Below, in pieces: positions 1,542 through 52,392 of a stretch of DNA of 64,000 bases; position 1 is the first letter of the stretch, and the number at the start of each line of letters is the position of its first letter. The position numbers and the translations under genes are program-made. The DNA is from Epiperipatus broadwayi (Eukaryota > Animalia > Onychophora): positions 1,674,001 through 1,738,000 of the forward strand of contig JAQFVV010000011.1 in NCBI GenBank assembly GCA_028023455.1, given 5' to 3'. The notes beneath the pieces were generated by a model that saw only the letters and a list, made by a program, of their open reading frames with translations, did not search any database and was not told the DNA's origin.

Positions 1542-1669
1542 CGGGATATTCCGTGTAGTGAAAAAGCTAAATGCTGACGTTTCAGTACAATATCAAGTAC
1601 CTTCCTCAGAGTACTTGATATTGTACTGAAACGTCAGCATTTAGCTTTTTCACTACACAGAATATCCCG
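1542..1669. mobile_element. Palindromic insertion (59-bp arms, 10-nt loop) derived from a hammerhead-bearing Penelope-like terminal repeat
   Basis: Arms 1542-1600 and 1611-1669 are reverse complements with one mismatch; the loop CTTCCTCAGA carries the HHR core on the minus strand. Confidence 0.8.
1569..1610 (-). ncRNA. Type I hammerhead ribozyme motif (family D), stem I 5' strand truncated
   Basis: Minus strand: T-CTGAGGA-A-GGTAC-TTGATATT-GTACT-GAAAC-GTC^AGCATTT; 5-bp stem II, palindromic ACGT stem III, GUC cleavage triplet. Confidence 0.7.
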
Positions 1670-1852
1670 CAAATAGTAATAATAATATGACATATATATA
1701 TATTACAACCTTTAGCAGAAACTAAAAGTCAAGTTAAATTTTGTAACAAGACATCTAAAACAAAAAAAGTGAATATAGTTTAATTCGATCATTAAGATTT
1801 TTATTAGTGTTTTGTAACGCCATAATTTTTATATATAAAAGTTACTATATCA

Positions 1853-1955
1853 GTATTTTGGTGGTCTAGAGGTCAGCACAGCTGCTTTACAAGCAGTTGT
1901 CCCGGGTTAGCGGGTTCGCTTCCCGGCCGATGCTATGACACATGAAGAAAAAAAT
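1853..1955 (+). mobile_element. tRNA-Gly(TCC)-derived SINE-like element (copy 1)
   Basis: A-box-like TGGTCTAGAGG, arm GCTGC-TTTACAA-GCAGT, B box GGTTCGCTTCC, 8-nt insertion in the T arm (GGGTTAGCGGGTTCGC), short tail TATGACACATGA plus A-run; matches copies at 31978 and 53162. Confidence 0.75.
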
Positions 1956-2604
1956 AAAATAAAATGTACACAGCATAAATTATAATAGTTTTAAGCTTAA
2001 ATAAGTATTTATCATACTAAAGTCTTTAAATTTTTAAATGGCTGGTAATGTAAATGATAAATAATTTGTACCAAGTGAATATTAATTTATTCCTAATTTA
2101 ATTGTTAAAATGTTTTGAAAAGCTTGCATTAATTTTAAGATAGAGTTCAAATCCTATATTTTGATTTTGTTGATAACAGAATTTTTCAAATGAAATGACA
2201 GGATCCCATTTTCCCCAGAATCCTGGGGGTAAAAAATTATCCCAGGATAAAAAACCAAATTTCCCGAGAATCGTTCTAATTCTTATTTTTTCACTTTTTT
2301 TAAAGATATCAAAAATATTCGCACTCGAAATTTTAGTATATGTATTTGCTCTACTTTTTCTGGTCGTATAATGAATTGCGAATAAAATTAGAAAAATGCA
2401 ATACATGTGCCACAGATAAAGAATTTGCCATACAAATTCAAATATATTGAATTATGGTCGCCTGTTATGTATAATGATATTTTACAAACTTGTCAGTAAT
2501 ATATAGGGTATATGAGCACAGACTTTCACACGCCCCATCACTCTCCACATTATCTCATAACACTGATACACTTGAGCACATATATGTCGAAAAGATAAGT
2601 AATC

Positions 2605-2648
2605 ACAAATAAACGTATTTCATGCTAAACCAGCAATCATCAGTTGGT
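2605..2648 (-). ncRNA. Hammerhead ribozyme motif, family A-I, degenerate
   Basis: ACCAA-CTGATGA-TTGCTG-GTT-TAGCAT-GAAA-TACGTT-TA^TTTGT; mismatches in stems I and III. Confidence 0.65.
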
Positions 2649-3068
2649 ACAGATTACCACTCTACACATATATGCTATAAGTGCTCAGATATATATTAAG
2701 ATAGCCAAACCTCATACTTTAATGGACAGGCTTCAATCTACTCCACACTCCAACTCTTCAACCATCCATCCAATTGAAAATCTGATTATGGAATGCCCAA
2801 AGGCCACCCTGAGGCCGAGATTATTGTCACACCCATGTTGACTAAGGTCAATCTGACCCCTCATGTACAAGTCATAATCCATTTAATACATATACAAGGG
2901 ATGGGCAGACATCTCTACAATGTAATAACTGAAACACAGGCTTATTATATACCTATGTCTATATATGTAATATATAGGGTATATGAGCACAGACTTTCAC
3001 ACACCCCACCACTCTCCACACTATCTCATAACACTGAAACACCATATATGTCGAAAAGATAAATAATC

Positions 3069-3112
3069 ACCAATATACATATTTCATGCTAAACCAGAAA
3101 TCATCAGTTGGT
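3069..3112 (-). ncRNA. Hammerhead ribozyme motif, family A-I
   Basis: ACCAA-CTGATGA-TTTCTG-GTT-TAGCAT-GAAA-TATGTA-TA^TTGGT; stem I intact, stem II weakened. Confidence 0.7.
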
Positions 3113-3602
3113 TCAGACTACCACTCTACACATATATGCTGTAAGTGCTCAGATACTCCACACTCCAACTCTTCAACCGTCCATCCAATTGAAAATCTGA
3201 TGATGGAATAAACTTATTGTTATGAAACCCATTTTCCACTTTGAAATTCTTTTTAATACAAATTTGTAAACAAAAATGTTGTATATGAAATTTGACTTTA
3301 TTAAATTCAAACTCAGGAAATGCCCATATTTGTAATTATTTTTGATAAATACAGGTATTTTATTTTATTGTTATGATTATTACTGTGGGTAATTTATTAT
3401 AAAGAAAAACATACCTAAATAAAGAAGTGCTTAAGTAATATTTGAACATTTTATTTTTAATTCTTAAAGACAAATCTTTAAGATTAGAACTTTTTTAAAA
3501 AATAAAAAAGATTTTTAAGCACGTTTTGAAAATCAAATTGTAACTAAGATTATTTGGTTTAGTTTTCATTGTTATTAAATAAGATATTAAATTAACCCTA
3601 TA

Positions 3603-4810
3603 ATGTCAATTGGAAGTGCATCTAAAGCATGGCAGTATTTTACACAAGATAAAAAATAAAAAACAGAATCTTCCATTTGCAATAAATGACATGCAACTAT
3701 AATATTTAAAGGGTTTTCAACAAATGGACTTCTTCTTCATTTAAAAAAAGTTCATAAGGAAGTGAAATTAAAGTAAATTAAAAAAGACCAAATGACACAG
3801 ATTTGGAATTAAGAAATTTTCAATGTAAAATTACATCATTTAGAAAAAAGGAGGAATTGTTTCAAAATTGGCAGCTGTTGATGGGTTTTCTATTAATGCC
3901 AATATTAATGCCAAACTTTGTCTAATAAAGGGATATTACTGAAAAAGTCTTCGCATGTTATGAATATGGTAAAAAGCCAATGCCATTTGGCAAAACAAGG
4001 TGTAAGGAAATAAACATACAAATTATAGGTGGCTCAAGATTTTCTATTTTGATGAATGAATGTACATATTTAAAAAATTGTTGCAATATGAATTCAAATG
4101 TGCATTCATCAACTAAGTTTTGGAACTTGGGTATGATTTGCACATTTGGAAGCCTTCCTGCAGAAAAAATTGATATGGTTGAAAATCAACTGTCAGAGTT
4201 TAATTTATCTATAAAGAAAGATATAATCTCTTGTGTGACTTTATGAAAAAAATTGGCAGATTAAGTGGTATGGAGCACCAACTATATTATGCAAATGAAC
4301 TACATTTAGCAGTTTCTGATGTTCTCTATAAAAATGGTGATTTATGATATATCAATTAATGAATGCTATAATCATGAGTGGAATTTTTCCAAATACTGTA
4401 GTGAAGATGACGAAACTGATAGTAAAGAAAAAAAGTTCATAACTTCAATGGATTTTCAATCAAGTGAAAATGATGATTTATTTAATTTAACAAACATTGA
4501 GCTCACTGATGAGCTTGCTCAAACAGTTCAAAAAGTCCATAAAATTGTACAAATGTTTTGTAAGTCATCACTCAACTTTTTTAATTCTATACAAATATGT
4601 AAAAATTGAGTACAATACAGAACTCAAGTTGCTACTTGATGTAAAAACAAGATGGAACAGCCTTCTTACAAATACTGCATTGAAAACTTGCATAATAAAG
4701 CCTTTGCTGGATTTTAATTTGAATAGCCTCAACAATATTGAAAACATATGAGGAAAATTAATATTGAAAGACTTGGTGAATGTAATATAAACCTATTTAA
4801 AGTAGAGGGT
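3603..4810 (+). pseudogene. Decayed hAT-superfamily transposase with N-terminal BED zinc finger
   Basis: Manual translation across stops and frameshifts: SKAWQYF..ICNK*..STNGLLLHLKKVH (BED finger); VSKLAAVDGFSINA; RFSILMNECT (first catalytic D region) ..FWNLG; DIISCVT; ANELHLAVSDVLY (CxxH-region motif); KVHKIVQMF; LLLDVKTRWNSL. Confidence 0.85.
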
Positions 4811-7800: not shown

Positions 7801-9303
7801 AGGCTTTTCTTCACTATTTTGTGGTTATCTATGTTAGTAAGCTGATACATATTTTTTTGCTTAGAAATGATAATTAAAATTATTACTTAAAAAAAACTGA
7901 AGTTGTCAGTATTATACAAATCTCTTACAAAATTTGAATATGAAATCAATCTAACAACATCTTCTCTGGATCTCAAAACAAATTGACAATGATTATTTGG
8001 CCTCAAGGTAATTTTGATATGTGTTTTGTTTTAGTACTTCAAAAAGAAAAAAAATATAATTTTCAGTAATTTATTTACATATATTTGACTCAAATTTGCA
8101 AACATTTGTCCATTTGCATACCTAAGTCACTTTTTTCTTCTTTATAAGCTAATGTTAAGTGCACCTAGCACTAGATTATGAAGAAGAAAACCACTTCAAT
8201 ATGCAGATGAACAAATGTTTGAAAATTTAAATTACAAATACAAACGGATGTTAAAAATCAATATTACATAAATTTATGCTTAATTATGTAACATACTTGT
8301 AAAATATTAATTTAAATAAAAAACAATTGTAAAAATGTATTTATGATAAAAGAGGAACTTGTTTTACAAGCTCCTGATAATTGCTTTCATAAATACTGGA
8401 CAATACTTTTTTGTGAAATTTTAATAAAAATGTAATTTTTATTTTAAGCATATTTTTATTCTTTCACAAAGTCTCAATTAATGTTTATATTTTAAAAATG
8501 GAATTCAAATAAGAAATATTTTATTCTACAATTTTTATAACCAGATAAGATTATGTCCAGTAACAAAAAGTGTCATTGCTATAGTTAAAAATGCCTTTCA
8601 GCACTTTATTTTTCTATTTTGCAAAGTTCAAATAAGAATTTTTAGAATGACTTTCATTTATAAGCTTACATTTGTAATAAATAATGTAAAGAATATTAAT
8701 ATGATATTGAAAAAATGTTTAATATTGCAAATATGGACAAAGTTATGATTGGAATCTTTCAGATACGACCGGGTGGAGTTGGACCTTGAACCGGTTAAAA
8801 TTGAAATATATATCTGTATTTCTAAAATGTCTCTATTTATTACTGATTTTACAATAACCAATATGTATATATTTCAAATTTCAATCATAAAAATTGTCTA
8901 TAATGTCGTTTATGATTATTATTTTACAAACATATATATATAGTACCAAATGAGCATTATGTTGAACTGGTATGTAAATTTAAAATTAATTCAAGTGGAG
9001 TCATTAATAATATCCATGTGACATTGATTTATTTATCAATTTAGACTTGTAACAGGAAGTGAATTCATTTTTATGTAAAATCGAAAGTTTAGTTAGTAAG
9101 TTAAAATATGGTTCTTTGCACAGTTTATATAAATATGTACTCTATTAAAATGTGTGCACGTTTATTTAATAATAAAAAGCTAATTCCAGAATAGTTTTAT
9201 TTTTAATTCTGTGGTACTGTAAGAATTTATAAACAAAACACAGAAAAGTGCAAAGCTAGTAAATTTTGAATAGTAACTTATCTTTTTTTACATGATAAAA
9301 TTT

Positions 9304-9525: not shown

Positions 9526-10283
9526 ATAATGTAAAAAATCATTACCTTTTGAAATGTCAATAGATTTTACTTTTTTTTTTTAAAAAAAAGTAACGATATA
9601 TAATCGTATTTTCTATCTAGTGAATTTACCAAATGATTCAGAGCAGTGAAAGAAAATAATTTTGAAAAGACATGCAACCCCCCCCCCCCCATAAAATATT
9701 AATATGATAGCACTTCGATGGTCCCAAATTGATTCGTTATATATATAAACAACTTTGTGGGTGTTTGATTAATATTGGAAAAAAAAAAAACATGGAAGAA
9801 GATGGTTTTATAAAAGAAAGTTTAAATTTATATATTATTAATGCTTGATAAATTTTTAATGGGATTTTATATAAAAGTCTGCTAATTTTAAAATCTGTTC
9901 TTTGGATATTATAATTTTAAATTTACAAATTACAAGTTAAACTATTTAACTATTTTTGGAAAGAAAAAAAAAATTATAATAATAAATGTTACTTTTAAAA
10001 AAGATCATTCATTAATTTGTACATTAGAAGTTGTAAAAAAGTAAATTTTGAAATATTCTCTTTTCTTAATGTCACATATAAAGCATATAACAGACAAATG
10101 GTCTGCTCGGGAGTATAAGAAATTCGAACAATGAATCTGACAGAGCTAAGTTGTGGCCTGTGGATCATGAGTCTATACTGTATCACTACAGTAAACCACA
10201 CACAAAAAAAACCTACAAAAAGTTAGATCATATGTAGATTTAAAAAAAATAGTTTCAGATTGACTAGATATTTATTTAAGATA

Positions 10284-10595
10284 ATGTTGGCATCAGCATG
10301 GGATTTGGCTTTCCATCATCAGATTTTCAATGATATGGATGGTTGAAAAGTTGGAGGTAGGAGTAGATTGAAGCCTTTCCATTAAAGTGTGAAGATTTGC
10401 TATCTCAATATAAACTGAGCACTTATTATATATATGGTGATGATAATCTGGACCAACTGATGAGTGCTGGTTTAGCATGAAATACTTATATTGGTGATTA
10501 TTTATCTTTTCTATATGTGTGTGGTCACGTGTATCAGTTTTATGAGATAGTGTGGATAGTTGGTGGGTGCATGAAAGTCTGAGTTCAAATCCCCT
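10284..10595 (+). mobile_element. HHR family A (A-II) 5'-truncated monomer with 16-bp TSD
   Basis: Homologous to 42590-42898; flanked by ATATTTATTTAAGATA at 10268-10283 and 10596-10611. Confidence 0.9.
10452..10495 (+). ncRNA. Hammerhead ribozyme motif, family A-II
   Basis: ACCAA-CTGATGA-GTGCTG-GTT-TAGCAT-GAAA-TACTTA-TA^TTGGT; predicted cut after 10490. Confidence 0.8.
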
Positions 10596-11439
10596 ATATT
10601 TATTTAAGATAGATGAAACAGTGTTTACATAGCAATGTCCAATAGCATCGTGTAGATAAACAGTTCTCACAAAGCTTGCCAGTTTCCTAGTGATAAAAAA
10701 TTCCATCCTTGTTTTATAATCTAGTTAAGAATAGCCAGAAACCCATTTGCTGACCAATATCAGATGGTTTTTCTATCTAAAAAAATCTAAGTTTATTTGG
10801 CCTGGATTTGAACCTAACATGAGGCAAGGTCAATGGATGTGCTACCAATTCAGTATGAGGTTCTTAAATATTTAATATATATTAAAACAAATACATTGTG
10901 ATGTCAAAATAATAGAACATTCTTCAGATCTGTGCTGCACTAATCTCACATTTCAGGTTCAAATTAGTTAATTTACATTCCCAAAAATCACCAGGCATCC
11001 TTCAGAACCTAGCAGTTACAGTCTTATTCAGATTACACCTCTTAGCAGTCTGTTAATATTTTTTAAATCTCAATTATTATAATTCCCCCCCCCCCCAATC
11101 TGACTTTAAAGTCAGCAAACACAGCTTATCCATTATTATACTTCTTAATGTTGATAGATTTTAAAATTGGAAAATCAGTCGTGGCGTACTGTAAATACTT
11201 TTGTAAATATTGCCTCCTTCAAATAATCAAAAACACTTTGCATCTCAACACTGATAACACTTGGTTCAACTTGTACATTTTGTAGTCAAGTTTACAGATT
11301 TTTCCATTACTTCTTATCTTTACCTATATAATTTCTAAACGATGATTTATATAAATCATCATGAATACTTATTTTCTCACAGTTTGTCGAATATTCCATT
11401 CTAAATTAGTTTTTTTTTTTAAAAAGACTAATAGCTTCA

Positions 11440-11605: not shown

Positions 11606-12137
11606 GATGAGTGCTGGTTTAGCACGAAATGCATCTTGGGGGTCATTTGTCTTTTATTGTATCTTTATTTATATGAATTTAAGAAGAATGGGAAAGTATG
11701 GAGGTGTTTATTATTTCTATAAAGATATTACATACGGGACTGAGAAAGGTGAATAACTCCGTGTGTGTAAATTTAAAAAATCAGATATATTAATCTTTAA
11801 CTGAGATTTAAAGTTTATATCTGTGCTAGAGATAATCTCTAGTTTCGAAAATGATTAGTAATAATCATTTGTGTATTTATCAGAAATGGATGGCGTCAAA
11901 GTTGTGAGTGGAGGAAGTTTGACAATGGTAAATGAAAAAGTAACAATTTACTCTAGATAAATACTTTGCATATAATAAAGATATATATGAGAGATAGTGA
12001 TCTAGGCCAACTGATGAGTGCTGGTTCAGCACGAAATGCATCTTGGGGGTTATTTGTCTTTTATTGTATCTTTATTTATATGAATTTAAAAAGAATGGGG
12101 AAGTATGGAGGTGTTTATTATTTCTATAAAGATATTA
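11606..12137 (+). mobile_element. HHR family C1, ~1.3 tandem units of 407 bp
   Basis: GATGAGTGCTGGTT.AGCACGAAATGCATCTTGGGGG..AAAGATATTA at 11606-11730 and 12013-12137 (period 407, about 4 differences); first copy is truncated inside CTGATGA. Confidence 0.9.
12007..12046 (+). ncRNA. Intact minimal type I hammerhead ribozyme, family C1
   Basis: CCAA-CTGATGA-GTGCTG-GTT-CAGCAC-GAAA-TGCA-TC^TTGG; canonical core, G10.1-C11.1 pair, palindromic ATGCAT stem III, AUC triplet, cut after 12042. Confidence 0.9.
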
Positions 12138-12189: not shown

Positions 12190-12503
12190 GTGATGTGATG
12201 CACTGTGACTTCTCCTTAAACGGAGTCGGGAATCTCTCAGCAACCATGCCCTGAGAAACCTGTTAGCCACTTTACCTTCCATTCCCCACCCTAAGTTTTC
12301 CCGTATTCTGCTCCATCCCATTTCCACAACATAATCGTTGTCAACTCTATGGCCTTTATATCTAAATCTCTCTTATCTTTTCCCAAACCCAGCATAAAAA
12401 CCCATAACCCACTTTCTGTATAATCACTTTTTCCATATTTATTCTTCCATGACTTCATTATTTGTACCCTTTCTATTTTCAAGCATTTACATTCAATTAA
12501 CAG
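12190..12503 (-). mobile_element. 3' end of a non-LTR retrotransposon (copy a)
   Basis: Closely similar to 61963-62301 and 62303-62640; the minus strand ends in a short (ATCAC/ATCTC)n tail; minus ORF 12291-12482 is the C-terminal remnant. Confidence 0.8.
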
Positions 12504-13944
12504 TACGGCTTATAATACACTGCTTTCCGCCTATAGTACCAATAGTGAGTTCTGCAATGTATAATCCTAATTTTTTTAAAAAAAACAACTTTTTTATATC
12601 GTACTAACATCTGAGAAAGTTTGACGTACATTAATGTGACATTTCTACTGAAAATAGCAATCATGTTTTCAGATGCATTATTCCACACGCACATACACAA
12701 TATATATATAAAGAGAGAAAATAAATATAATGACATCTTTCATTATTACATTCTTTTGCACAACTTATACCGAAGTTATTTCAATATCATCTTTCAAAAA
12801 CAATCTTACCATTCTGTCAGCCGAATTCTCTTTTGTTCAAAAAAAACCATTCTGGCATAATGTCCCCTTAATCCATGATAAAATTGATTAGACAGTTTTC
12901 TTTGTACTAATAATATTTACCATAAAAATAAAGAAATATTATTTTGAAAAAAATAAGCATTTAGAAACATTAGCATATTTTGCTTATCAAAATCTGGTTT
13001 GAGATTAGTTTCAAAAGGGCATTAGCTTACTGCTGATAATGAATTTGCTGATAATAAAAACCATTATTAGAATATAAAAATGCCAACATAATAATAAAGT
13101 ATGAACTACGGTGTCAAAGAAACATAAATAATATTTATTTAACAAAATATTTAATACATACTTTCAATAATCAAGAGAATATTTTATTTTTTATACATAC
13201 TTATAGAAGTTAAAACATTTCGTTTGAATATATTATAATTACTATTTATACAAATTAAAAATGTATGTGTGTATATATACGCACACATAGAAATATATGA
13301 ATTCTAGCTGGAAATATTGTTTTTATTCATGCTTATAATGTACGATATTCGGAGATTATATTTTTAACCAGGGAATTTTTATCTGAAACGTAGATAAAAG
13401 CAGCACTACATGAGGTTTCGCCTTTAAATTTTTGTTATGAAGATATATATATATATAATGTTTCTGTGATGTGCCATCTATACAAACACATAATAAACAG
13501 TGTGTAAGTATATCAAAAATATAGGAAGAACATTTAATTAAGATATGGAGTAACACCTCACTTTAATGCATATTTATAGTTACATATTTTAAAAACATAG
13601 ATCACACTTTTTTCTCTAAAGGAAGTATTGAGAATGGTAAAATAATAATCATCACGCGATTGCAATAATTTATTTCACAACCTTCTCAACCAGATTTCAA
13701 ACTCGAAATTTAACACACACATATATTACTCTTATACAATAAACATTCAAAATCATTTTATTGCAAGATATATAATTTTAAAGTATAAACATCACATGAC
13801 CACCACTTCTTATGCTTGTATATAACTGTTGTTAAAACAGGCAAAACTCACTATAAGTATTGCCACACACAGCAAGCTAGAGTAATCCATGGATACCAGA
13901 AGGCTTGTGCATAAAACCCCCATCTAGTGCCTACTCATCTAATA

Positions 13945-13986
13945 TTCCCAGACTAGTTTCTGGCTTGTGGCCTTCATCAGTGAGGA
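13945..13986 (-). ncRNA. Hammerhead ribozyme motif, family B
   Basis: TCCTCA-CTGATGA-A-GGC-CACAA-GCC-A-GAAA-C-TA-GTC^TGGGAA. Confidence 0.8.
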
Positions 13987-14064
13987 GCCTTGGATCTGAG
14001 AGCACTGCACTTACTCATCCAATATCCCTAGACTAGTTTCTGGCTTGTGGCCTTCATCCAAGGC

Positions 14065-14106
14065 TCCTCACTGACGAAGGCCACAAGCCAGAAACTAGTC
14101 TGGGGA
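14065..14106 (+). ncRNA. Hammerhead ribozyme motif, family B (best copy)
   Basis: TCCTCA-CTGACGA-A-GGC-CACAA-GCC-A-GAAA-C-TA-GTC^TGGGGA; 6-bp stem I, palindromic ACTAGT stem III, GUC triplet, cut after 14100. Confidence 0.85.
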
Positions 14107-14479
14107 TATTGGATGAGTAGGCCCTAGATGGGGATTTTATGCACAAGCCTTCTGGCAATCATTGATTACTGTAGCTTGCTGTGTATGGCAATACGTATAG
14201 TGAGTTTTGCCTGTTTTAATTTTAAAGTATAATATACCATTCACTGCTTTTGTCTTTTCCTCAAGCTTAAAATTTTAAATTTATTTCTAATTAAGTAATC
14301 AGATAATTTTTCATAAAATAGTTATGGAATCTTTTCGTTTATTTAACAATGGGGAGTTGGAGAAAAGCCTTGTATTTTCATAGTTTACTATTCAGAATTT
14401 ATTATATATATATATCTGCTAATATTTTGTTTGTTAGTGAATCCAGAATAGTCAGATCCAATGCTATGGATCATAATTA

Positions 14480-14597: not shown

Positions 14598-15850
14598 AGG
14601 AAATAACAATCACCCGAATTTCCACACCCATGTTGATAGTTCACTATATGACCATTATTCCCTTCTCAGTCAAATTAGGGAATAGTTTCTATCCACTATT
14701 AATACATTGTGGAAGGGTGAACAGTGAGGTAGATATTTATTTCCAAGGATTTAGTCATTTTTCATTAGTACATCCCTTATCTCATCTTCACCATGTTACA
14801 ACCATCCATCCACACAGAAAATCACTGAACCCTTTTTTAAACAGAGCAAAACTCTCCATACAGTATTGCCACCATGTGATGCTTAATGGTTTTGAACCCT
14901 TTTTTGTCATGCATGCACTTTACATACAACCCTTGCTCATCAGATGAAACATATTGGTATGTGTCTGACTTGCACTTTTACAGTATCTTAGACACATTTT
15001 TTTAAATAGAAATAACTGAATGAAAAGATGATCAACAATTGGCAATTTAAACAAATTCACTTATCTATTGTATTCTCCAAAGAATCCATATCACAGAGTT
15101 AAGACTTCAACTATAGTTGAAGTCTTTATATTAACATTCTAAGGAAGGCATTAAGGAATGGGGTAAAGAATTTAGAGCAAGTGTTAAAATGGATAAATAT
15201 TAATGTGAATGTGATATTATTTATATGTACTAAAATTTAAATTCAACATTTTGTTTTGACCGACTCTTTGGAAACCCTGAGCAACTGCTCAGCATAGGAA
15301 GAGTTTGCTGATGAACAAAAGTTCTTGTTTCAAGTTTTTTTTTTTTAATCAACAAATAAATAAAATACTAATTTGCACTGCAAATTTTTATTATCTTGAA
15401 ACACTATTTTAAAAATAATCTTCCTACCCCCCTCCCAATTCCAACATTCTGGGTAGATATTAAGTCTTAAACTGCTCAAAAAAAACAAAACAACTTAAGA
15501 CAGTTTAGGATGGTGAATAAACATATAAAAATACATCTGAAATTATTCCTTGAGATGCTTTGCTGTATTGGTACAATGGACAACTCTGGAGTTAAAAGTC
15601 TGTGGATTGTGGCTCGGCTCTGTCATGTTTAGTGCTCAAATTTCTTTTAAATTCCTGAAAAATAAACAATCAATGATTTTAATAACAGTGTTCTTTGTCA
15701 TTGTATTATAAAGGTACACAATTTTACACATTTTGGGAGATCCAGTAAGTTCCTTAAAATTTTTGCTATCAAGTTGTAGTATAATGTTTCAACTAAATGT
15801 TGCTATTGTGTAAATTTAGTGAACAAATGCAAATTTATCTTTAAAATGAT

Positions 15851-16129
15851 TAATCACATGATCACTATTTCTTATGATAGCACATAACTGTTATTAAAAC
15901 AGGAAAAACTCTCCATACAGTAGTGCCACTCAGTGCCAACTTGGATCTGAGAACAGTGCTCTCAGATCCAAGGCTACTCATTGAAGAAAGCCACAAGCTA
16001 GAAACAGGTCTGGAGATATTGGATGAGTAGGCATTAGATAGGTATTTTATGCACAAGCCTTCTGACATCCATTGATTAGTCTGGCTTGCACTGAATGGCT
16101 CTACTGTATGGAGAGTTTTGCCTGTTTTA
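15851..16129. mobile_element. HHR family B fold-back element (copy B2), degenerate ribozyme
   Basis: Tail, short minus arm 15896-15938, hairpin TTGGATCTGAGA..TCTCAGATCCAA, plus copy to 16129 with TTGAAGAAAGCCACAAGCTAGAAACAGGTC. Confidence 0.88.
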
Positions 16130-30270: not shown

Positions 30271-30300
30271 CTATCTTTATGTACTGAACAATAATAAAGT

Positions 30301-32237: not shown

Positions 32238-32241
<4 letters not shown>

Positions 32242-32334
<93 letters not shown>

Positions 32335-32352
32335 AAAATAATAATAATAATA
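32242..32352. repeat. (AAT)n microsatellite interrupted by poly(A)
   Basis: About 27 AAT units, an A-run, then 4-5 more units. Confidence 0.98.
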
Positions 32353-35553: not shown

Positions 35554-35759
35554 CCATTAGATTATGTTGAACATATGTGTGTGTGTGTGGAAATTGTCAA
35601 TCGAACGTATATGATAAAATAACTCAGACGTAATCTTACTTCCACAAACATTTATTACAAGACACATTCTTTTACAAACACATTGATGATGATTAACATT
35701 AATTTCACATTAAGTACAAACTTGACTAAACAACATTTAAATTACATAAATCCTATACA

Positions 35760-41895: not shown

Positions 41896-42274
41896 CTTTA
41901 AGAGCTTAAGATCTATAAATTGCAGCTCAGTTCAGCCATTTCTCTGAGCTATTAAGGTTTTGAATATATATACTGACTATGTATGAAGATAGAGAAATAA
42001 ATTAACTAAGTAATTTTCAGCCATAAAATAGTACTTGCTTATCAAAACATACCTTATATTTTTGTACATACATACACAAAGCTCACAATTTTTCCACTTA
42101 TAAATACTCATTTGTGGAAGATAGTATTTTTTTTTCTTTCAATATAAAAGATCGTTTTAGTTTTACTTCAAATATAAGGGATTTGAACTCAGACTTTCAA
42201 GCATCTTCCACCATCCTCACTCTTTCATACTACTGATACACATGATCACACACATGCAGAAAAGATAAATAATC

Positions 42275-42318
42275 ACCAATATATGTATTTTGTGCTGAAC
42301 CAGCACTCATCAGTTGGT
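42275..42318 (-). ncRNA. Hammerhead motif, family A-II, G12A (predicted inactive)
   Basis: ACCAA-CTGATGA-GTGCTG-GTT-CAGCAC-AAAA-TACATA-TA^TTGGT. Confidence 0.7.
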
Positions 42319-42752
42319 CCAGATTATCATCTCCCATACATATATATAATCAGTGCTCAGTTAAGATAACAATTCCTTATACTTCAATGGATAGGCTTCA
42401 ATCTACTCCAACTTCCAACTCTCCGTACCATTGAAAATCTGATAATAGAATTCCCAAATTCCATGCTGATGCCAATTTTGTTATTAAGCCTGCATTCTGC
42501 CCATCCTTCTTCTGTGTATTTAAATGAATATTGTCCTATACGTGAGGGATCAGATTGACTTGAGGTCAATATGGGCATGATAACAATATTGGCATCAGCA
42601 TGGGATTTGGAAATTTTATCATCAGATTTTCAATGGTATGGATGGCTGAAGAGTTGGAGTAAATTGAAGCTTGTCCATTGAAGTATAAAGATTTGCTATC
42701 TTAATATAAACTAAGCACTGATTCTATATATGTATGAGAGATGATAATCTGG

Positions 42753-42796
42753 ACCAACTGATGAGTGCTGGTTCAGCACGAAATATGTATATTGGT
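42753..42796 (+). ncRNA. Intact type I hammerhead ribozyme, family A-II
   Basis: ACCAA-CTGATGA-GTGCTG-GTT-CAGCAC-GAAA-TATGTA-TA^TTGGT; canonical core, 5-bp stem I, 6-bp stem II, quasi-palindromic stem III, cut after 42791. Confidence 0.9.
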
Positions 42797-43212
42797 GATT
42801 ATTTATTTTTTCTGCTTGTGTGTGGTCATGTGTATCAGTAGTATGAGATAGTATAGATGGTTGAAGGTGCTTGAAAGTCTGAGATCAAATCCCCTACATT
42901 TATAATTCGGCTCCAGGTATATGAGTGCCTGGTATTTCAAATCTTACACATTAAGCCTGCCTTCTGTCCATCCCTCTTCTGTGTATTTACATGGATACTG
43001 TCCTATATGTGAAGGGTCAGGGTGACTTGAGGCCAACAAGGGCATGATAATATAAGCATCAGCATGGGATTTGGAAATTCTATCATCAGATTTTCAATGG
43101 TATGGATGGCTGAAGAGTTGGAGTAGATTGAAACCTGTCCATTAAAGTGTAAGGATTATCTTAATATAAACTGAGAACTGATTATATATATGTATGGGAG
43201 ATGATAATCTGG

Positions 43213-43256
43213 ACCAACTGATGAATGCTGGTTCAGCACGAAATGCGTATATTGGT
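43213..43256 (+). ncRNA. Hammerhead ribozyme motif, family A-II (A10.1.C11.1 mismatch)
   Basis: ACCAA-CTGATGA-ATGCTG-GTT-CAGCAC-GAAA-TGCGTA-TA^TTGGT; exactly 460 nt downstream of the previous HHR. Confidence 0.8.
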
Positions 43257-44479
43257 GATTATTTATCTTTTCTGCATGCGTGTGATCATGTGTATCAGTA
43301 GTATGAGATAGTGTGGATGGTTGAAGACGCTTGAAAGTCTTGAGTTCAAATCCCCTATATTTACAATTCGGCTCCAGGTATGAGTGCCTGGTATTTCAAA
43401 ATTTTACTTCAAATGTTATTGATTTCATAAGAACTGGTCATATTTTCAAAACATATTATGCCACGCAAATAAAATAAAAAGAAATACATTATTAAAATCG
43501 TAAATTTTTCAACAGGAAATACCTATACAATATTAATTATTTCAAAAGTTAATAAAATGTAATGGCATTTATGATTCTGGGGGGAATTTCAAAAAATGAA
43601 CTTAATCATTTACAAGAACAAATTTCTTTTCAGATTAATAATTCTTAATTTTCTTATTGAGTGAAATAACCTCAGTTAATTAAAAAAAAAAATCGAGATA
43701 TTTTTAAAATGAATCATTATATAAAAAAGATTTAAGAATTAAAAGTAAAATAAAATGAAATCTTTCTTGTAAGAGATTTCTTCTTCAATATATATATTTT
43801 CTTACAACGTGGTCTATAGAAGACAATAGCATTTAAATATCCATCAATGGAACAAAAACTTGTCTAATATGTCTTTATAGAACAACAGTTAACAACGTAG
43901 ACAACATTCTATAGGCTAACCAAACGATGGCAATGAATATTAACATTTTCCTTTTTTGTTTTACCCATTTACTGATCACTAATTAGATGATTAGTTAGTT
44001 TAACTATGAAACAAATGTTAAGCGTGTTTGGAACTTGGGAGGGGGGATCCCCAAGTCTGAATGTCAAGTAGTGTTAAACGGTATGTCTTAAGATCTTTTA
44101 CATATATCAGTACCTGGTTATTGCTGAATAATTTTAAAAAAAGTTAAACTGAAAGTGGTATTTCTTTAGTCAGTAGAATATCCAATCCAGCAACTTCTCA
44201 GTTTCTCAAAAAATTACAAATAATTATTCTTATTACACATGCTATCATAATAAAATATTACTTTTCTGCTTAATGTATTATAACATATTGGAGATTATGT
44301 AGCTTTTTGCATGTGTGTAATCATTTGTATCTGTTGCTTGACATAGGGTGGAGAATGTTTGAGATAAAGAGGAAAATAAATAGAATTAAAAATTCTGACT
44401 TCCAATCCCTCTATTTAAAAACAAAAACAGCAATATCCAATGGTATTTCAAAAAATAAAGATTGAGTAGCAATGAATTT

Positions 44480-44900
44480 AAAAAAAATAATAACCATAAA
44501 TACTTAGTCATATTATTAACACCAATTGAATATAATATATGAAATTAATCGTAGAATTAAACATGGAGTGTTTTTGGTCGAAATAACTCGGTATTAGGAA
44601 GAAATATACAGGTGATTTTAAAAAGATGTTTAATAAATGTATTTTATTAGTTCTTACTTATGACCACAATGGTTTGTCATTTAACAGAAGAGAAATACAG
44701 AGACTACAAGAAAAGGGTCAAAAGATGCACACTGAAAGATTAGCAAGAAGAGATCTAAAGCAAAATGTATGGATGAGAGAACAACAAATAACAATGATAT
44801 CACTGAAAAAATTAAAAGAAATGAAACTAGTCTGAAGAAATCAATCAGAAAAGATGATAACAAGTTATTAAATGAAAACTTAAATGATATCTTACATACA
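44480..44900 (+). pseudogene. RTE-clade LINE RT C-terminal fragment
   Basis: HKYL..EINRRIK..WSVFGR..KMFNKCILLVLTY..RREIQRLQ..RD..NVWMREQ, matching the RTE pattern YLG..EI.RRI..GW.AF..VFN.CILPVLTYG.ETW..W.REQT. Confidence 0.75.
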
Positions 44901-45804
44901 AAATATAAGGTAAAATTAGAAAAAGATACACTCAAAATAGATGAGCTATGCCTGTCCCTCAAAAGTTCTCAATCTGACACCCAGATATTTTCACAAATGT
45001 GGACATGTATAAAACTTCTATTTAAGCATACACATAGTGCAATGCAAATATTGAATTAAGAGTTAAGTAAAATAAAATATGTATTTTCTCATTCAACTAC
45101 ATCTTTTTCTCTCTCCAATTTTTATAATAATTCTACTTCATTCTACTAGTGGTGAAATATTCCAACAAATTATCTAAATTATGTGGTCGATGGATTTAAA
45201 CTGCAATGCTGGAAACATTTTATTGCCTTTATAGTGAAATGATGGATGTATACCTAGCAAAAATAAACCTCAAATTTTACTTCACTTAATTAATTAATAT
45301 TTTTTATTATGATGGGTAAATGGAGTAAGATAAATAAAACTAACACAAAAAATCATACATTTGAAAAAAAAAAAGTGGACCAATGCATATTTTTTTATAG
45401 AAAGGAATAGCAAATTGGTCTGTCTAATATATCTAGAAAGTATTTCAATTAATAAAGAATACCTTATTAAGAGACTATTTTCAAAACATTCTGATTCCAA
45501 CAAAAATTTTGGGGAAGAAAAAATATTAAAATAGAAAACTTGAAAAGGAGCTTGTCAAGTAACTGACAGGTTTTGCAAAAAGTATAAACAAATCAGAAAA
45601 ATTCTATGAAAGCAATTACAATTTTTTTTTTTTAAAAAAAGGAAGAAAATTCAAAACCATATTTTGAAAAAAAGTTTACAAAAGATTGCATTCTAGATGC
45701 ATAGAATTAATTTGTTCAGAACAGAAAAAGAAATATGAGAATAAATGCCACAAAGAAAAGGTTCATGGCGAATTGAAAAAAAATGTCATTAAATTTGAAA
45801 TAGT

Positions 45805-45940
<136 letters not shown>

Positions 45941-46493
45941 GTTACTTTATTTTTAATTCACAAAAATATGATGGCCCTTATTTAAAAAGAAAAGTTAAAA
46001 TTGGCCTGCCAATTGAAAAGGTTGCCTACTCTTAATAATCAGTGATAAGATAATTAAATTTTTGATCAAATGCATGTTAATTTTTAAGTTGATAATTTTG
46101 TATGGCCTGCAAATGAGATTATAAATATCCAAATGACCTTTGGTAGAAAAAAGGTTCCCTATCCCTGAACTAAGAAAATTTTCTGGAATAATGCTGAAAA
46201 AAGACTGTTATAGAACAAACAAATTGGATTAAATTTGGAGAGGTTTTCAATTTGCATTGGATTAATAACAGTGAAAATGATGAGGATAATGTGTTCAATC
46301 AAAATATTTTATTCACTATTTATAATCATGTAATTAATGTTTTAATATTTTAAGTCAGAAAGTATACTAATAATAATTTTCAATACAATGGATTAATGTT
46401 TTATGTCTAATGACAATTTATAAAAAGTATGTTCTCATAGAACTTGGATTGCTTAAATTACTTACTTCCAATTCATTCAGTTAATCAATTTTT

Positions 46494-46891
46494 AAATCAT
46501 TAAACATCACATGACCACCATTAAATATGCTTACACAAGCTTTTATAACAGAGGCAAAACTCTCCATACAACAGTGTCGCCCAGTGCAAGCCAGAGTAAA
46601 CAATGGATGCTAGAAAGTTTGGGTATAAAATCCCTACATAGTTCCTAGTCATTCAATATCTCTGGACTAGTTTAGCTTGTGGCTTTCATCAGTTGCATTA
46701 GATCCTAAGATACAGGTGCAGTGCTCTCAGATCCAAGGATCCTTATTGATGAAAGCTATAAACTAAAAACTAGTTTAGGGATATTGGAATGACTAGGCGC
46801 TAGATAGGGATTTTATGCACAAAGCTTCTTGTATCCATTGGTCACTCTGGTTTGCACTAGGTAGTGCTATTGTTTGGAGTTTTACCTGTTC
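46494..46891. mobile_element. HHR family B fold-back element (copy B5), aged
   Basis: Tail, minus copy with CTGATGAAAGCCACAAGCTAAACTAGTC, plus copy with TTGATGAAAGCTATAAACTAAAAACTAGTT; possible TSD ATCA(A/G)TTTTT at 46484-46493 / 46892-46901. Confidence 0.85.
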
Positions 46892-47374
46892 ATCAGTTTT
46901 TCATTATATAGAAAGACATAATGATTTAAGTAATACAAAGTTTTAACAATCACATACATATATGTACTTTAATAAGATAAAAATTATCTGCAGAAATTTT
47001 TAAAATTGATTTTTCAACTATCACAAATCAATAACATATAAGTTTATCACTATATATCTAAAATAGGATAATTCCTAATCTTTTGCAGTCTAAATAAAAA
47101 ATTTAACAACTGCCATTTATAGAAAAACGCACCCCCCCCCCACAAACACACATACAATTTGTATAGACTATGCATTATAGTAAAGTAAAAGAAGTAATAA
47201 ATGATTTCTTATCCAGGAGATAGTACGAGATTTAAGCATTAAAAGTGATATGGCCATGTCATGATTCATGGAACTTAAACTCTTAACCCTATCATTAAAT
47301 CATCACATTCAAACATGTAGGACATAATCTTGTAGCAAAAATGTTTCCATTACATGACTGTATATTTAAATCAT

Positions 47375-47528
47375 ATGTTATATATAGAGTACATAAAAAC
47401 ATACTCTTAACAAGCTTCAAAAATACCCTCAACCCCAGATGACGCTAGATGCAGAAACCGCTGTCTGGGGTTGAGGGTATTTTTGAAGCTTGTTAAGAGT
47501 ATGTTTTTACGTACTCTATATATAACAT
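47375..47528. mobile_element. Palindromic insertion (65-bp arms) whose 24-nt loop is a hammerhead core remnant (family E)
   Basis: Arms 47375-47439 / 47464-47528 with one mismatch; centre reads CCCCA-GATGA-C-GC-TAGAT-GC-A-GAAAC-CGCT-GTC^TGGGG. Confidence 0.8.
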
Positions 47529-50500
47529 TTGTAAATACGAGCTTTATTAAAATTAGGTCATATGACATCTGACTTGATTTTTTATCAATTTAAATCATGT
47601 TTGCACTGAAATTTTATTGTACAAATAATCCTATTTATGGATTGTAATTTACATGCAATAATATCAAATCTAAACATTATTCTGCAATGATAAAATTAAC
47701 GTATATGGTAATTTGATTGACAAACTAATGTAGTTTGTGCTGAATAAGATGAATGAAAGAGGAAGATCAAAGAAGCTGGTTCATTGCTAATGACTCCTAT
47801 ACGATTAACAAAAAAGATTCTTGCATTGCTTTGTTCAGAAAGTGGAATAGGTAAATTTATAAATCTGCATAATGCCTGCTGTAATGGTATTTTAAACTTA
47901 CCATGAATGTTAGCTCTGAGTTTGAGTGCTAAAATTTGACCAACTAGGCTGAAAGCATGCTCAACTAGATATTGAAAGTTTAAAATAAAAAAATCTTTTC
48001 TTTATGAGCAGGTAAAACATTTATGATAGAATTTAAAATGAACCTAAATATTATTACATACCAATACAGAAATATTTGGTCAATTGATCAAAAGATTACA
48101 AATACAATAAAAAGTAATGCATTTAAGTAAGCTATAAAAAAAATTACACCAGGAGAGATTAACGCATAAAAATAATTTAAAGAAGCAACACATTTCAAAA
48201 GCAAGGTAAGTTATAAATTTAATTTTTCTTTAATGATGAATCTTTGCCAAGCAGTATTCTTCTTTAAATTACCGTTTAATTATGGCACAATTAATACAGC
48301 ATTAATGCTGTTAAAAGCTTATTCTTTACATCATAAACAATCATAAATGTGAGTTTTTAACAGCATTATTAAAATACGTTTGTTTATATGCATGAAAGGA
48401 AGTTAGTTGAAGATTGAAGTTTATAATGTTTTCTAAAATTTATAGTTATACTGAAAACTTGAACTTTCATTTCTCAAGGGTCTAGAGAAAATAAATTAGA
48501 TGTATAAAATCAATAGAAGTCCGTAAAAATTATAGATAAAGAAGCAATTTAATGCTTAGTCACTGAAATATAGTACACATAAACTAGTAATCGTTAATTT
48601 TAAGTACAACTCAGATATTTAAATTCAAAACATTCCACACTTATTATCTGAAAAATGTGTGTATGTTTATACATATAAAATATAACATGTAGGTAATTTT
48701 AATATAATAATAATAAGTTTGTTGCTCAAAGGTTCATAAAAAATTTGAATACCACAATGATAAGTCATGATTAATGGACTCTGGGCTCTAGAATCCACAA
48801 TATGACCACTGCATTGAATTACGTGGGACAAAATAGGCACACATTAAAAAAAAAAAATCAGAATCAACACTAATTATTAGATTTTAAGAAAACAAATAGA
48901 CTTATCGAATCATAAATTTTTAAAAAAAATTAATTTACATTTACTTGCTTATGACAAATGTTACTTCTTTAATTATCTTTCAAAATGTTAAGAATAACTA
49001 CAAATAAAGCAAAAATCTCCATTTTTTAAAGTGGTAAAACTTTTACACCATTGGGTTTTGAATTCTGTGCAGTACAAGAAATTACAGTGAAGCTATGATA
49101 TCTATTATATTTTGTCCCAAACCCTTCTCATGTTTATTTCAGATAATAGTTAAGATTCTGTTGATAGAGATTTTGATCATGGTATAAAAAATGCATACTC
49201 ACACATAAATTAAGATTACATTGATTTTTCCCTTCATTTGTATTGAAAATTCAAACTGGCATATGGTTGTTCATCTGCTTAATGTAGTTCTCTCTTTCTT
49301 CTTTAAATCTGAGTGCACTTTCAATAAGTTCCACATAATCAAAGTGCATCTCGCCTTAGCGTATAAAAAAGAAAAAACCCACTTCCTTGCGAAAATGAAC
49401 AAACATATGCAAGCTAGAAATTAAGATTATAGCATAAAGTAAATTTTAAAAAATATAATAATGTAGTAATCGATAAAAAATTTAAGAAAGCACATTGACA
49501 TATATATTTACTGTGTGAATGTTCATTCATTCATGTTTAGTCAAACAATAAAAATAATTAAAAAAAACGTATGTACTATATCTTTATTTTTTTTACATAA
49601 AATAAAAAGAGAAGTATACAGATCTTTATCACAATTAAACATGCTCTGGATAACATCCTTGTTCTTCAATAACTCTTTTTCCTTATGGAAATATAACAGC
49701 CCATCTTGATGTCAATGTGCTACAACCTTCACAATTGTTTTGATGTTTTTAAGTCCATATCAACTTCAGAATCATAGTCACCCCTAACTTGCCATTACCC
49801 ATTTCCAAATTATCAAGTAAATCCTTCAAACTATACAAGAATGATCAACAATGATTTTTTTCAGTTACTAATAAATTTTATAAAATTTCTAGCTTTATAC
49901 TTATAAAATATTGTTTATTATGTAAAATACTAATCATATTAAACTTTTCAAAGAAATAAAATCAAAATAAATGCACTTTTGATATAATGCTAAGAAACAC
50001 TATTAATAAATATGTTGATGGTCTGTGACAATCAGAGATGAAAAATGACAGTTGCCATATCATAAATTTATTTAATTTGTAAATTTTAATGTTTTCATTT
50101 TGGTTTATTTACTTTTATTTTTAAGAGTATATGATTATATTGTGGCTTCCCTATATTTAAAATGCATCCATAAATAGTCATACTCTGACAGCATTTGTCC
50201 TCATAACACTCAATTAATTTGTAATTTATGTATTCATTTAAAAAAAAATTATATTTAGTTATATTTTTCATCAAAAGATGGAACCGCTTGTAAAAAATAT
50301 AACTGACATGCAATTTATAAATTTTGATTTTAGTAGTATTGCTTTGAAATAGTATTACAATAAATCATTTTGGTTTAATTTTTTATACAATTTGACAAAA
50401 GATAACTAATTATAGTTAATATTTATTAATAATTTATTACTTAACACAATTGTAATATTATTTATATATTTTTCATTTTTTTTGACAGTATAGACATTTA

Positions 50501-51952
50501 TTATTTTACTGAAAAATTCACAGCCAATATTCAAAACTTATTTTATTTAAAAAACTGGTAAATTATACTGGTTTAAATTTTTATATGCCTTAATTTCATA
50601 GAACTTTTTTAATTGAACATGTGTCCACCTCAGTATCTTTCTAGATATATCTGTGCTTTGCAATAATAAAATCAGTTTGAATTTAGCTTGTATATTATAA
50701 GTTTTATGCCCTCTTTTTCAGCATTAGCAGTATCTAATACCATTTGTAGTCTAAATGTAATTTTTTTTTGTTTTGGAAATTATGCTCTTTTTTCTACTTT
50801 TTTAAGCAAATATTATAATACTTACTGCAAATAATGCTAACAATAATAGAAAAGTAAATTTGCTACATTATAATAACAGACTGTAAGAAAGGAATCAACT
50901 GATTCACTTAGAAGCTATTTAAATAAAAGTGATTTTATTTCTCCATTTTCACAACTTTATGGTTATACTTTTTATACAAATATTATAATACTTATATGTA
51001 ATAAATTAGTGATATATTTTAATATTTGACAACTAAAAAGGTTTTTTATTATTTACTTTTTAGATAGAGCTTAAGCATGTTTTCAATGTGGTCTACCAGA
51101 ATCATAGATCTCACCAAAAAAAAAAATAGCCATCACAAGTAAGTAATAAAATATTTTTAATGTCTGACAATTAAAAAGTGCTTAGTTGTATTTAAAAAGT
51201 AAATAAAAGACTTTTCAGTTGTTGGAAGTTCTAAACGTTTTTCTAACTTATTATAAGTACACATGAAAAGAAAAATGAATATTATAATACTTATTTTAAA
51301 TAATACTTATATTAAAAAAAATCAAATTTGAAATGATAATTATATAAAACAAATATTTTTCTTAGGAGTAGTATGAGATACTGCTTGTAGTATTTATGTT
51401 ATCAAATCATTATAGCCATTACTCAGAGATGTTGCAGAAATGAAAATGCATATTTAAAAAATATACTTTATAGAAAGATAATAAAATACACATTTTTTAA
51501 ACAAATAAGCTAAAAAATTGTATGTAAATATTTTCAAACGCACTCAAAATAAATATTTTATTTCAAAAGTGTGTTGCTTGACAAAATCACAAATCCAACA
51601 GATTAATAAAAATTTGAAAACATTTTCTTTCTAAACTTTATTAAAATCTTTCTAAAATAAAAACAAAAAAGATGTAAGAAACAATTACTGCATTTATGAA
51701 TTATAAAAATTAAGAGAAAGAAGAAGATTATTATTATTTTTCATAAATAGAAATTGGATTCAAGTTATAAAAAACTATCCATGGTGATAATTATTTCATT
51801 GGGATTATAAATTGTCAATGATAGATATAAAAAAGAGGATACATATTTCTATAGCATACGTTTCTATAGCTATGAAGAAGAAATAATGGATATTGAAAAA
51901 TGTCGTATGCATTTCCTATAAATAGAAAGTTCACTAAATAAATGAAGGGGTG

Positions 51953-52392
51953 TAGTGAAAATTACACTACATAAATATTATTCATTAAGTAGATGTCCAG
52001 TCTAATGGATGACTAATAAAAATTATTAATATACTTCCATCAAGTAGTTTATGTCAAAATTGTGATGGCAGTAAGTTTGACACTATAGTAAATTTAAACT
52101 ATAGTAATTTACTATCTGGGGATACTAAACAATGATAATATGTGTAGAAGATTGTGATCTGGGCCAACAGATGAGTGCTAGTTCAGCATGAAATATGTAT
52201 CTTGGAAATCATACATCTTTTTCATCAGTCTTTGATCATACATTTATGATTGCATCCCTCCACAAAGTGTTAAAAGTGGACAGAAACCTGTCCCCATTTT
52301 GTATAAGAGTAGTATAATGAAAATTATACTACAGAAATATTCATTAAATGGATAATCTCCCACTCTAATGAATGACAAATAAAAAATATTAA
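51953..52392 (+). mobile_element. HHR family C2, ~1.2 tandem units (period ~362 bp); degenerate HHR at 52164-52205
   Basis: TGAAAATTA(C/T)ACTAC at 51956 and 52318; CCAA-CAGATGA-GTGCTA-GTT-CAGCAT-GAAA-TATGTA-TC^TTGG (U4A); body homologous to 30301-30540. Confidence 0.85.

Follow-up and report, generated by a model that had tools for sequence, protein, structure and literature searches.

Minimal or atypical type I hammerhead ribozymes have been described in the pseudo-long terminal repeats (pLTRs) of Penelope-like elements (PLEs) and in dispersed copies, with dual minimal hammerhead ribozymes (min-HHRs) lying 100-700 bp apart on opposite strands (PMC4209133), and animal retrozymes have recently been argued to be non-autonomous PLE derivatives (10.64898/2026.07.22.740005). 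Here we analyse a stretch of 64,000 nucleotides from the onychophoran Epiperipatus broadwayi (contig JAQFVV010000011.1, positions 1,674,001 to 1,738,000 of the forward strand; hereafter the window), in which hammerhead motifs recur within three families of short repeated units, named A1, A2 and B. These families are quite probably short non-coding, non-autonomous retroelements that carry a type I hammerhead and were inserted by PLE machinery encoded elsewhere.

The hammerhead core string CTGANGA-N6-30-GAAA occurs 19 times in the window, with 3.3 occurrences expected. A strict type I descriptor, defined by the exact core, a helix I of at least 4 bp, a helix II of at least 3 bp, a palindromic or short-hairpin helix III and a position 17 (H17) other than G, gave 7-8 matches, while neither of two sets of simulations (100 and 120), drawn from the window with a first-order Markov model of base-to-base transitions, gave any. 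Permitting one core mismatch gave 12 matches against 0.22 expected. Searches with nhmmer, seeded with the best and intact copies, delineated 12 family A and 9 family B hammerhead-homologous sites, that is, 21 sites. All 12 A sites were found again by a covariance model built from seven A1 copies, with E between 2e-20 and 3e-6, and its strongest further match reached about 15 bits; this A1-only model is family-specific and does not detect family B. Cores at the B sites were parsed by eye from alignments, and in MAFFT alignments across families the gaps in helix III of A2 and B are put in the wrong place. A preliminary description of the window, made from its letters alone, had counted about 25 motifs and had named Rfam hammerhead models and a type I descriptor as checks. 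The motifs are real, at the 21 homologous sites, while the figure overcounts decayed and look-alike sites, only 10 of the 21 having full cores. The descriptor bore the motifs out (8 matches against none in 120 shuffles), and Rfam did so in part, with no match in the window at gathering score and sub-threshold A1 and A2 matches in searches of 59-71 nt.

The A1 ribozyme reads ACCAA / CUGAUGA / GUGCUG-GUU-CAGCAC / GAA / AUACGUAU / A / UUGGU. The core and helix II of A2 are as in A1, with AUGCAU as helix III and AUC as the triplet, and the B ribozyme reads UCCUCA / CUGAYGA / A-GGC-CACAA-GCC-A / GAA / ACUAGU / C / UGGGGA, its triplet being the classical GUC. The topology is of type I with helix I open, helix I having 4-6 bp, helix II 6 bp in A and 3 bp in B, and helix III consisting of a palindrome of 6-8 nt. 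Families A and B are alike only in the core: helices I, II and III differ and yet pair, as had been said of the stems beforehand, and since the two families are unrelated outside the core, this combination amounts to covariation at the family level. The helix III palindrome is lineage-specific (AUACGUAU in A1, AUGCAU in A2, ACUAGU in B), and pair 10.2-11.2 presents a compensatory G-C to A-U change between B sub-lineages. Covariation keeps the helices as the sequence changes, the number of independent events being small. Moreover, the identity between A1 and A2 peaks exactly over the hammerhead (0.97, versus 0.4-0.55 over most of the unit), which points to selection on the ribozyme in master copies. 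Judged from sequence, A and B carry type I hammerheads with a palindromic helix III and are predicted ribozymes. The family A loci, some of them flanked by target-site duplications (TSDs), are the following.

42161-42169: left TSD of the largest A1 composite, TTTTACTTC, up to 13 nt with AAAT (P under the null 0.002)
43402-43410: right TSD copy of the largest A1 composite
42170-42490, minus strand: inverted 5'-truncated A1 copy, reference positions 92-419, without tail
42274-42319, minus strand: hammerhead of that copy, with G12 changed to A
42483-42949, plus strand: full A1 unit with a hairpin tail of about 38 nt
42752-42797, plus strand: best hammerhead of the window, ACCAA/CUGAUGA/6-bp helix II with G10.1-C11.1/GAA/AUAUGUAU/A/UUGGU, predicted cleavage between 42791 and 42792
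42950-43401, plus strand: second full A1 unit with tail, head-to-tail with the first and 88.7% identical to it
43212-43257, plus strand: hammerhead of the second unit, core intact, A10.1.C11.1, spaced 460 nt from the first
35760-36667: A1 head-to-head inverted pair, with a 14-nt direct repeat ATAAATCCTATACA at 35746 and 36668
35765-36214, minus strand: left arm of the inverted pair, tail at its left end, hammerhead at 35907-35952
36268-36670, plus strand: right arm of the inverted pair, no tail, hammerhead at 36521-36564 (plus) with a 2-nt deletion in helix III
2496-3209, minus strand: A1 partial tandem with a tail between units, no TSD found
2604-2649 and 3068-3113, minus strand: hammerheads of this tandem, 464 nt apart, cores intact and helix II decayed
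10255-10603, plus strand: solo 5'-truncated A1 copy, reference positions 68-421
10451-10496, plus strand: hammerhead of the solo copy, core intact, one helix III mispair
11606-12137, plus strand: pLTR-like A2 partial tandem, a 125-nt copy starting within the ribozyme core (11606-11730) followed by a full 407-nt unit
12005-12048, plus strand: intact A2 hammerhead, helix III AUGCAU, triplet AUC, predicted cleavage 12042/12043
30266-30551, plus strand: A2-like copy adjoining the B locus B4
30324-30369, plus strand: decayed hammerhead of that copy, G12 changed to A, 3 of 5 helix I pairs
51951-52391, plus strand: A2-like copy, hammerhead at 52162-52207 with U4 changed to A

The invariant core (C3 U4 G5 A6 N7 G8 A9...G12 A13 A14, A15.1-U16.1, H17) is exact at 8 of the 12 A sites and 2 of the 9 B sites, and is therefore intact at 10 of 21. 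The sites intact or nearly so in every feature are 42752-42797, 12005-12048 and 10451-10496 in family A and 14065-14106 in family B; the copies at 12007, 14065 and 42753, which had been singled out as intact, are indeed the best in the window. The G10.1-C11.1 pair is found at 42752, 12005, 42274 and 10451 (as G.U in the last) and in the A consensus. Defects at the other sites comprise G12 to A, U4 to A, C3 to U or A, core deletions and truncation within the ribozyme, and helix II of decayed copies holds many C-to-T and G-to-A changes. The window has a GC content of 24-31% and a strong, methylation-type CpG depletion (CpG observed/expected 0.31, TpG/CpA 1.2 at 28% GC), to which most of these C-to-T and G-to-A changes in the ribozyme helices are due; in character, the window resembles gene-poor DNA from a CpG-methylating eukaryote, probably an animal. 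Copies inserted together are only 82-97% identical, so most insertions are old, and most copies are predicted to be dead, with CpG decay.

A hammerhead monomer can form just 2 bp of helix III. Double-hammerhead pairing was calculated at -23.0 kcal/mol, versus -5.7 per monomer (42753-42796), with similar values for A2 and B. The cofold minimum free energy (MFE) is dominated by trivial helix II swapping, and thermodynamic support is neutral overall. As modelled, the motifs are of the dimer-dependent kind described for PLEs and amphibian retrozymes (PMC4209133, PMC7229834).

The carriers of these motifs are discrete non-coding units of about 0.2-0.47 kb: the A1 unit has about 420 nt plus a hairpin tail of 38-45 nt, the A2 unit 407 nt, and the B unit about 200 nt plus a tail of about 45 nt. 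Their 3' ends are constant (...CAAAUCCCCUAUAU in A, ...GAGUUUUGCCUGUUUU in B) and their 5' ends variable. Ribozymes in head-to-tail units are spaced by 460-464 nt in A1 and by 407 nt in A2, the common part of the A2 tandem at 11606-12137 being 96.8% identical; this locus and 2496-3209 are partial or decayed tandems. The composite at 42170-43401 runs, in order, TSD, inverted copy (no tail), unit plus tail, unit plus tail, TSD. Within tandems a tail separates the units, and each composite bears a tail on one outer side only; the homology of the tails between sub-lineages indicates that the element itself provides their template. Five or more head-to-head pairs are present in the window, and all five B loci are of this form.

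13789-14216, both strands: B1 composite, made of a full minus-strand copy with a tail of about 45 nt at its left end, a short minus-strand fragment (14012-14058) and a plus-strand copy, with a 16-nt flanking direct repeat TAATTTTAAAGTATAA
14065-14106 (plus strand) and 13945-13986 (minus strand): intact B1 hammerheads, predicted cleavage GUC/U between 14100 and 14101
15850-16128: B2 head-to-head pair, plus-strand hammerhead at about 15975-16016 with C3 changed to U and a broken helix III, minus-strand arm without ribozyme
20194-20447: B3 head-to-head pair, 13-nt flanking direct repeat GTAAATCTATTTC, minus-strand arm truncated at reference position 12, inside the ribozyme, and plus-strand arm at 103
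29904-30270: B4 head-to-head pair, 10-nt flanking direct repeat CTATCTTTAT, minus-strand arm truncated at reference position 26, plus-strand arm with a core deletion
46500-46895: B5 head-to-head pair with the A-U version of pair 10.2-11.2, hammerheads both decayed (46651-46694, minus strand; 46732-46788, plus strand)

The inner junctions of the B pairs vary by locus (reference positions 1, 12, 14, 26, 103 and 117), so that an element of fixed foldback structure is excluded. Direct repeats of 13, 14, 16, 13 and 10 nt flank 5 of the 10 composites, with P <= 0.002 for four of them under a null of 2000 random position pairs whose 99th percentile was 10 nt. Their position around whole composites implies that each complex arose as one insertion event. 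The 5' truncation points do not coincide with the predicted cleavage site in A or B. As had been described, every site falls within a non-coding element or composite, about 130-1230 bp in size: the window holds no open reading frame (ORF) above 143 aa, and Pfam found no reverse transcriptase (RT), GIY-YIG/endonuclease or transposase domain in 84 ORFs of at least 66 aa, so that the absence of a helper from the window was rightly noted. The assignment to type I hammerheads with a palindromic helix III, in retroposons of the Penelope-like or retrozyme kind, also held up, with TSDs, 5' truncation, tandems and a one-sided tail.

In the mechanism proposed for these elements, a tandem or pLTR-like locus would be transcribed and two ribozyme copies would pair via their palindromic helix III into a double hammerhead, the predicted cuts AUA/U (A1), AUC/U (A2) and GUC/U (B) releasing RNA of unit length, which a host ligase may then close into a circle. 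An RT/GIY-YIG enzyme of a PLE would then copy the unit RNA at a staggered chromosomal break, the expected outcome being partial tandems, an adjacent inverted 5'-truncated copy, a tail of about 40 nt at one end and a TSD of 10-16 bp. After insertion, the copies would decay neutrally, chiefly via CpG deamination.

Several observations weigh against reading the families as PLE-mobilised ribozyme elements. The core is mutated, deleted or truncated at 11 of the 21 sites, and all B copies have A.A in place of the usual G10.1-C11.1. Monomer folds are no stabler than those of shuffles (z from -0.3 to -1.4), and the unit-length RNA 42792-43251, from a decayed copy, is not unusually self-paired (MFE z = -0.67 versus shuffles), unlike published circular retrozyme RNAs. 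Two consecutive units with complete cores, of 460 nt each, occur at a single locus (42483-43401), and no TSD was found for the other 5 of the 10 composites. The window contains no PLE RT against which 3' ends could be compared, and no related sequence was found in the metagenome and viral-contig collections searched. Finally, Rfam reported no hammerhead on the whole window at gathering score or E<=10, nor on sub-ranges of 400-700 nt, where the output consisted only of sub-threshold "miRNA" matches on long hairpins and one tRNA. The Rfam family RF00163 (Hammerhead_1) surfaces for A1 and A2 only when 59-71 nt are searched, as the best family for A1 (42752-42797; 12.5 bits, model 1-45) and the sole family reported for A2 (12005-12048; 16.4 bits, E 0.065), both short of the gathering threshold of 34, and with alignments that cover the whole model in the register of the descriptor; family B gave no Rfam hammerhead match even in a short local search. 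Since standard Rfam thresholds miss the whole class, genome annotations under-report such elements. The ribozyme strings were not found in the searchable literature or supplements.

Outside families A and B, matches to CTGANGA..GAAA number 9 against 3.3 expected, a weak excess. The preliminary description had proposed at least 5-6 families in a diverse community, which is overstated, only A1, A2 and B, in two unrelated groups, being confirmed. The other candidates belong to the hairpin elements named C to G.

34243-34483: element C, a perfect 241-bp palindrome in a (TA)n tract, with 119-nt arms, 100% complementary, and a 3-nt centre
47372-47531: element D, a hairpin with 68-nt arms (97%) and CAGAUGA..GAAAC-CGCU-GUC/UGGGG at its apex
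1542-1669: element E, a hairpin with 59-nt arms (98%), reading CUGAGGA..GAAACGUC on the minus strand
33652-33834: element F, a hairpin with CUGAAGA..GAAA at its apex
22979-23190: element G, an inverted pair of A-like 3'-terminal fragments of about 100 nt, 70.7% identical to A1 reference positions 343-423

Each arm of element C, formerly the TTGCTA/AGCTAGCT family, holds the module UUGCUA/CUUAAGA/helix II/GA/AGCUAGCU/A/UAGCAA, which has two core defects (G5 to U, and one A of GAAA gone) and retains the full hammerhead geometry, with a 6-bp helix I, an 8-nt palindrome and a G-C closing helix II; by its sequence, it would be either a dead derivative or a look-alike. Element D, formerly the CCCCA/TGGGG family, is doubtful as a hammerhead, having one core mismatch (CAGAUGA), a helix II of 2 bp and a helix I that is the palindrome itself; the direct repeat ATTTAAATCAT (11 nt) is found at 47364 and at 47588, and the 3' half of element D resembles B. 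Element E, formerly the ACGT family, is unsupported, with a helix I of just 2 bp. Elements F and G, also listed as ribozyme elements, are not hammerheads: in F helix I fails and a 91-nt search gave no Rfam hammerhead match, a type III arrangement needing an extra nucleotide at the cleavage site and likewise having no Rfam match, and G has no ribozyme, its CTGATGA..GAAA match being fortuitous. Sub-threshold Rfam matches to microRNA precursors, on both strands, were obtained at 1542-1668, 8094-8226, 14021-14110, 23010-23162, 33687-33797, 34309-34417 and 47414-47489; these are generic hairpin matches and no evidence for microRNA genes. Transcripts of the long near-perfect hairpin loci would be long double-stranded RNA. 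A lone hammerhead-shaped site at 54346-54395 (plus strand; CUCAC/CUGGAGA/6-bp helix II/GAA/../A/GUGAG, with A6 changed to G) scores higher with the A1 covariance model than any other site outside the families (15.4 bits, E 0.07) and lies outside the repeats shared within the window; it may have survived from an old insertion of another family or may have arisen by chance.

It might be argued that the motifs descend from hammerheads and are not, or never were, catalytically relevant, having instead another role such as RT recognition or promoter activity. Metazoan PLE min-HHRs cleave poorly in vitro (PMC4209133), PLE clades lacking hammerheads proliferate well (PMC8557442), the youngest element, C (arms 100% identical), has a dead core, and B lacks G10.1-C11.1. 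However, A and B agree exactly in the catalytic nucleotides and in pairing, not in helix sequences, and the canonical hammerheads of invertebrate retrozymes cleave efficiently (PMC7229834), so that we consider this explanation unlikely. If C belongs with A and B among PLE-dependent elements, ribozyme cleavage would not be needed for mobilisation in this genome, and the main output could be hairpin RNAs entering small-RNA pathways rather than circular RNAs, a scenario that we hold to be rather unlikely. Every B locus, like several A loci, is a head-to-head pair, whose transcript would be a perfect hairpin of 120-400 bp. The local density of 21 sites in 64 kb would, moreover, greatly exceed the averages published for genomes.

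Alternatively, the A and B copies could be solo pLTRs, the 3' ends left by random 5' truncation of full-length autonomous PLEs with ORFs beyond the window. In autonomous PLEs the hammerhead is located within the pLTR, close to the 3' end (PMC8557442, PMC4209133), and heavy 5' truncation, seen in several copies here, is typical of PLEs. Such an origin is quite unlikely: 5 of 8 A1 copies start within reference positions 1-21, the units at 42483 and 42950 both begin at ATTAAGCCTGC and end 465 nt on, the A2 unit is a discrete 407 nt, and no ORF remnant adjoining any copy was found.

Under another explanation, the palindromic carriers would be DNA transposons of the foldback or miniature inverted-repeat (MITE) type and their hammerhead-like strings fortuitous. 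This is likely the case of D, E and F and possibly that of C, which are single-locus, near-perfect hairpins in TA-rich flanks, in which "helix I" or "helix III" is formed by the palindrome of the element itself and the cores are defective or the stems fail, F having no Rfam hammerhead match; the weak excess of core strings outside A and B goes in the same direction, while in C the full hammerhead geometry is kept. For the families as a whole it is very unlikely, and it was rejected for A and B, whose outer ends are constant and whose inner junctions differ by locus, whose TSDs are long and variable (10-16 nt) instead of short and fixed, which form tandems, and in which no block is better conserved between subfamilies than the hammerhead. 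Least probable of all, and only barely credible, is that they are short interspersed nuclear element (SINE)-like sequences mobilised by a long interspersed nuclear element (LINE), as in Schistosoma Sm-alpha, with the hammerhead as a passenger, since TSDs of 10-16 nt, 5' truncation and a likeness by eye to LINE RT C-termini at 33043-33363, 19200-19641 and 44587-44832 (unconfirmed by Pfam or homology search) would fit such insertion, but the copies have no poly(A) or microsatellite 3' tail, and their two complete outward 3' ends, tandems and one-sided tail are unlike LINE twin priming, in which the two segments are different parts of one poly(A)-ended copy.

Repeats shared within the window make up about 24% of its length. 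Resemblance by eye to a LINE RT C-terminus or a hAT transposase (..DVKTRWNS..) was noted in ORF fragments at 33043-33363 (minus strand) and at 19200-19641, 44587-44832 and 4310-4748 (plus strand), none of which was confirmed by Pfam or homology search. A tRNA-Arg(TCG) gene at 31978-32049 (plus strand; Rfam 36.5 bits, also called by ARAGORN) lies within a small repeat family whose two further copies, at 1825-2070 (Rfam 25.6 bits, 1855-1934) and 53143-53376 (ARAGORN pseudo-tRNA 53161-53242), retain tRNA-like remnants, and the three together look like a tRNA-derived SINE family. A 428-bp unit without hammerhead core is repeated 2.0 times at 99% identity (138-996) inside a block (7-1315) that holds internal direct and inverted repeats, representing either a very young duplication or another tandem-forming element. 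A 345-bp tandem at 61983-62646 (1.9 copies, 82%) has a third copy of about 80% identity 50 kb away (12191-12528); it is unclassified, non-coding and without hammerhead. A 110-bp unit is repeated in tandem (2 copies, 85%) at 35339-35554, directly upstream of the A1 inverted pair 35760-36667. The (TAA)n/(ATT)n microsatellites at 32241-32353 and 45818-45940, of 30-38 units, both sit in a shared low-complexity repeat (32166-32492 and 45667-46008). An apparent homology of about 400 bp upstream of B1 and B4 was rejected as a spurious AT-rich extension.

In comparison with known systems, families A1, A2 and B belong to a kind already described (PMC4209133, PMC7229834, 10.64898/2026.07.22.740005) and are at most a new member of it, with no new element type or mechanism. 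They share with PLE min-HHRs (PMC4209133) the type I fold, a helix I of 4-6 bp, a long helix II (6 bp in A) and a palindromic helix III (15.2-16.2), as well as several consensus families per genome, solo copies together with opposite-strand pairs, and a dimeric design; they differ in the 6-8 nt palindrome of A and B as opposed to no loop 3, in the lack of a flanking RT ORF and in the A.A of family B at 10.1/11.1. Family A, in addition, lacks the bulged base before helix II of the known hammerhead kind. As in non-LTR (long terminal repeat) retrozymes (PMC7229834, 10.64898/2026.07.22.740005), the units are non-coding, 150-450 bp long and low in GC, with one type I hammerhead each, monomers and dimers, TSDs above 4 bp and a proposed PLE origin or mobilisation; unlike them, they are arrayed as dimers and partial tandems at most, long arrays being absent, and occur in inverted pairs as often as in tandems, their unit RNA has no unusual degree of self-pairing, and the loop 1-loop 2 tertiary contacts of canonical retrozyme hammerheads are not identifiable here. 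PLE insertions (PMC8557442) present the same partial tandem (pLTR), adjacent inverted 5'-truncated copy, 30-40 bp tail at one end and (TA)n or AT-rich targets, whereas here the units have a few hundred bases and no ORF, and TSDs are clear for half of the composites. In the consensus of RF00163, helix III is likewise a palindrome without a loop (ACGcgCGU). Newt satellite 2 and Schistosoma Sm-alpha are likewise genomic type I hammerhead repeats in which two copies provide a stable helix III (PMC4209133), but they form long satellite arrays or are SINE-like with pol III features, in contrast to the dispersed, PLE-style composites of the window. The window thus offers a clean and fully dissected example of such retroposons, in which inverted and tandem composites arose from single insertion events and TSDs and a heritable one-sided tail can be recognised, an anatomy that supports the recent proposal of animal retrozymes as PLE parasites. 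On this comparison, the carriers are best read as PLE-mobilised, that is, as animal non-LTR retrozymes or min-HHR elements.

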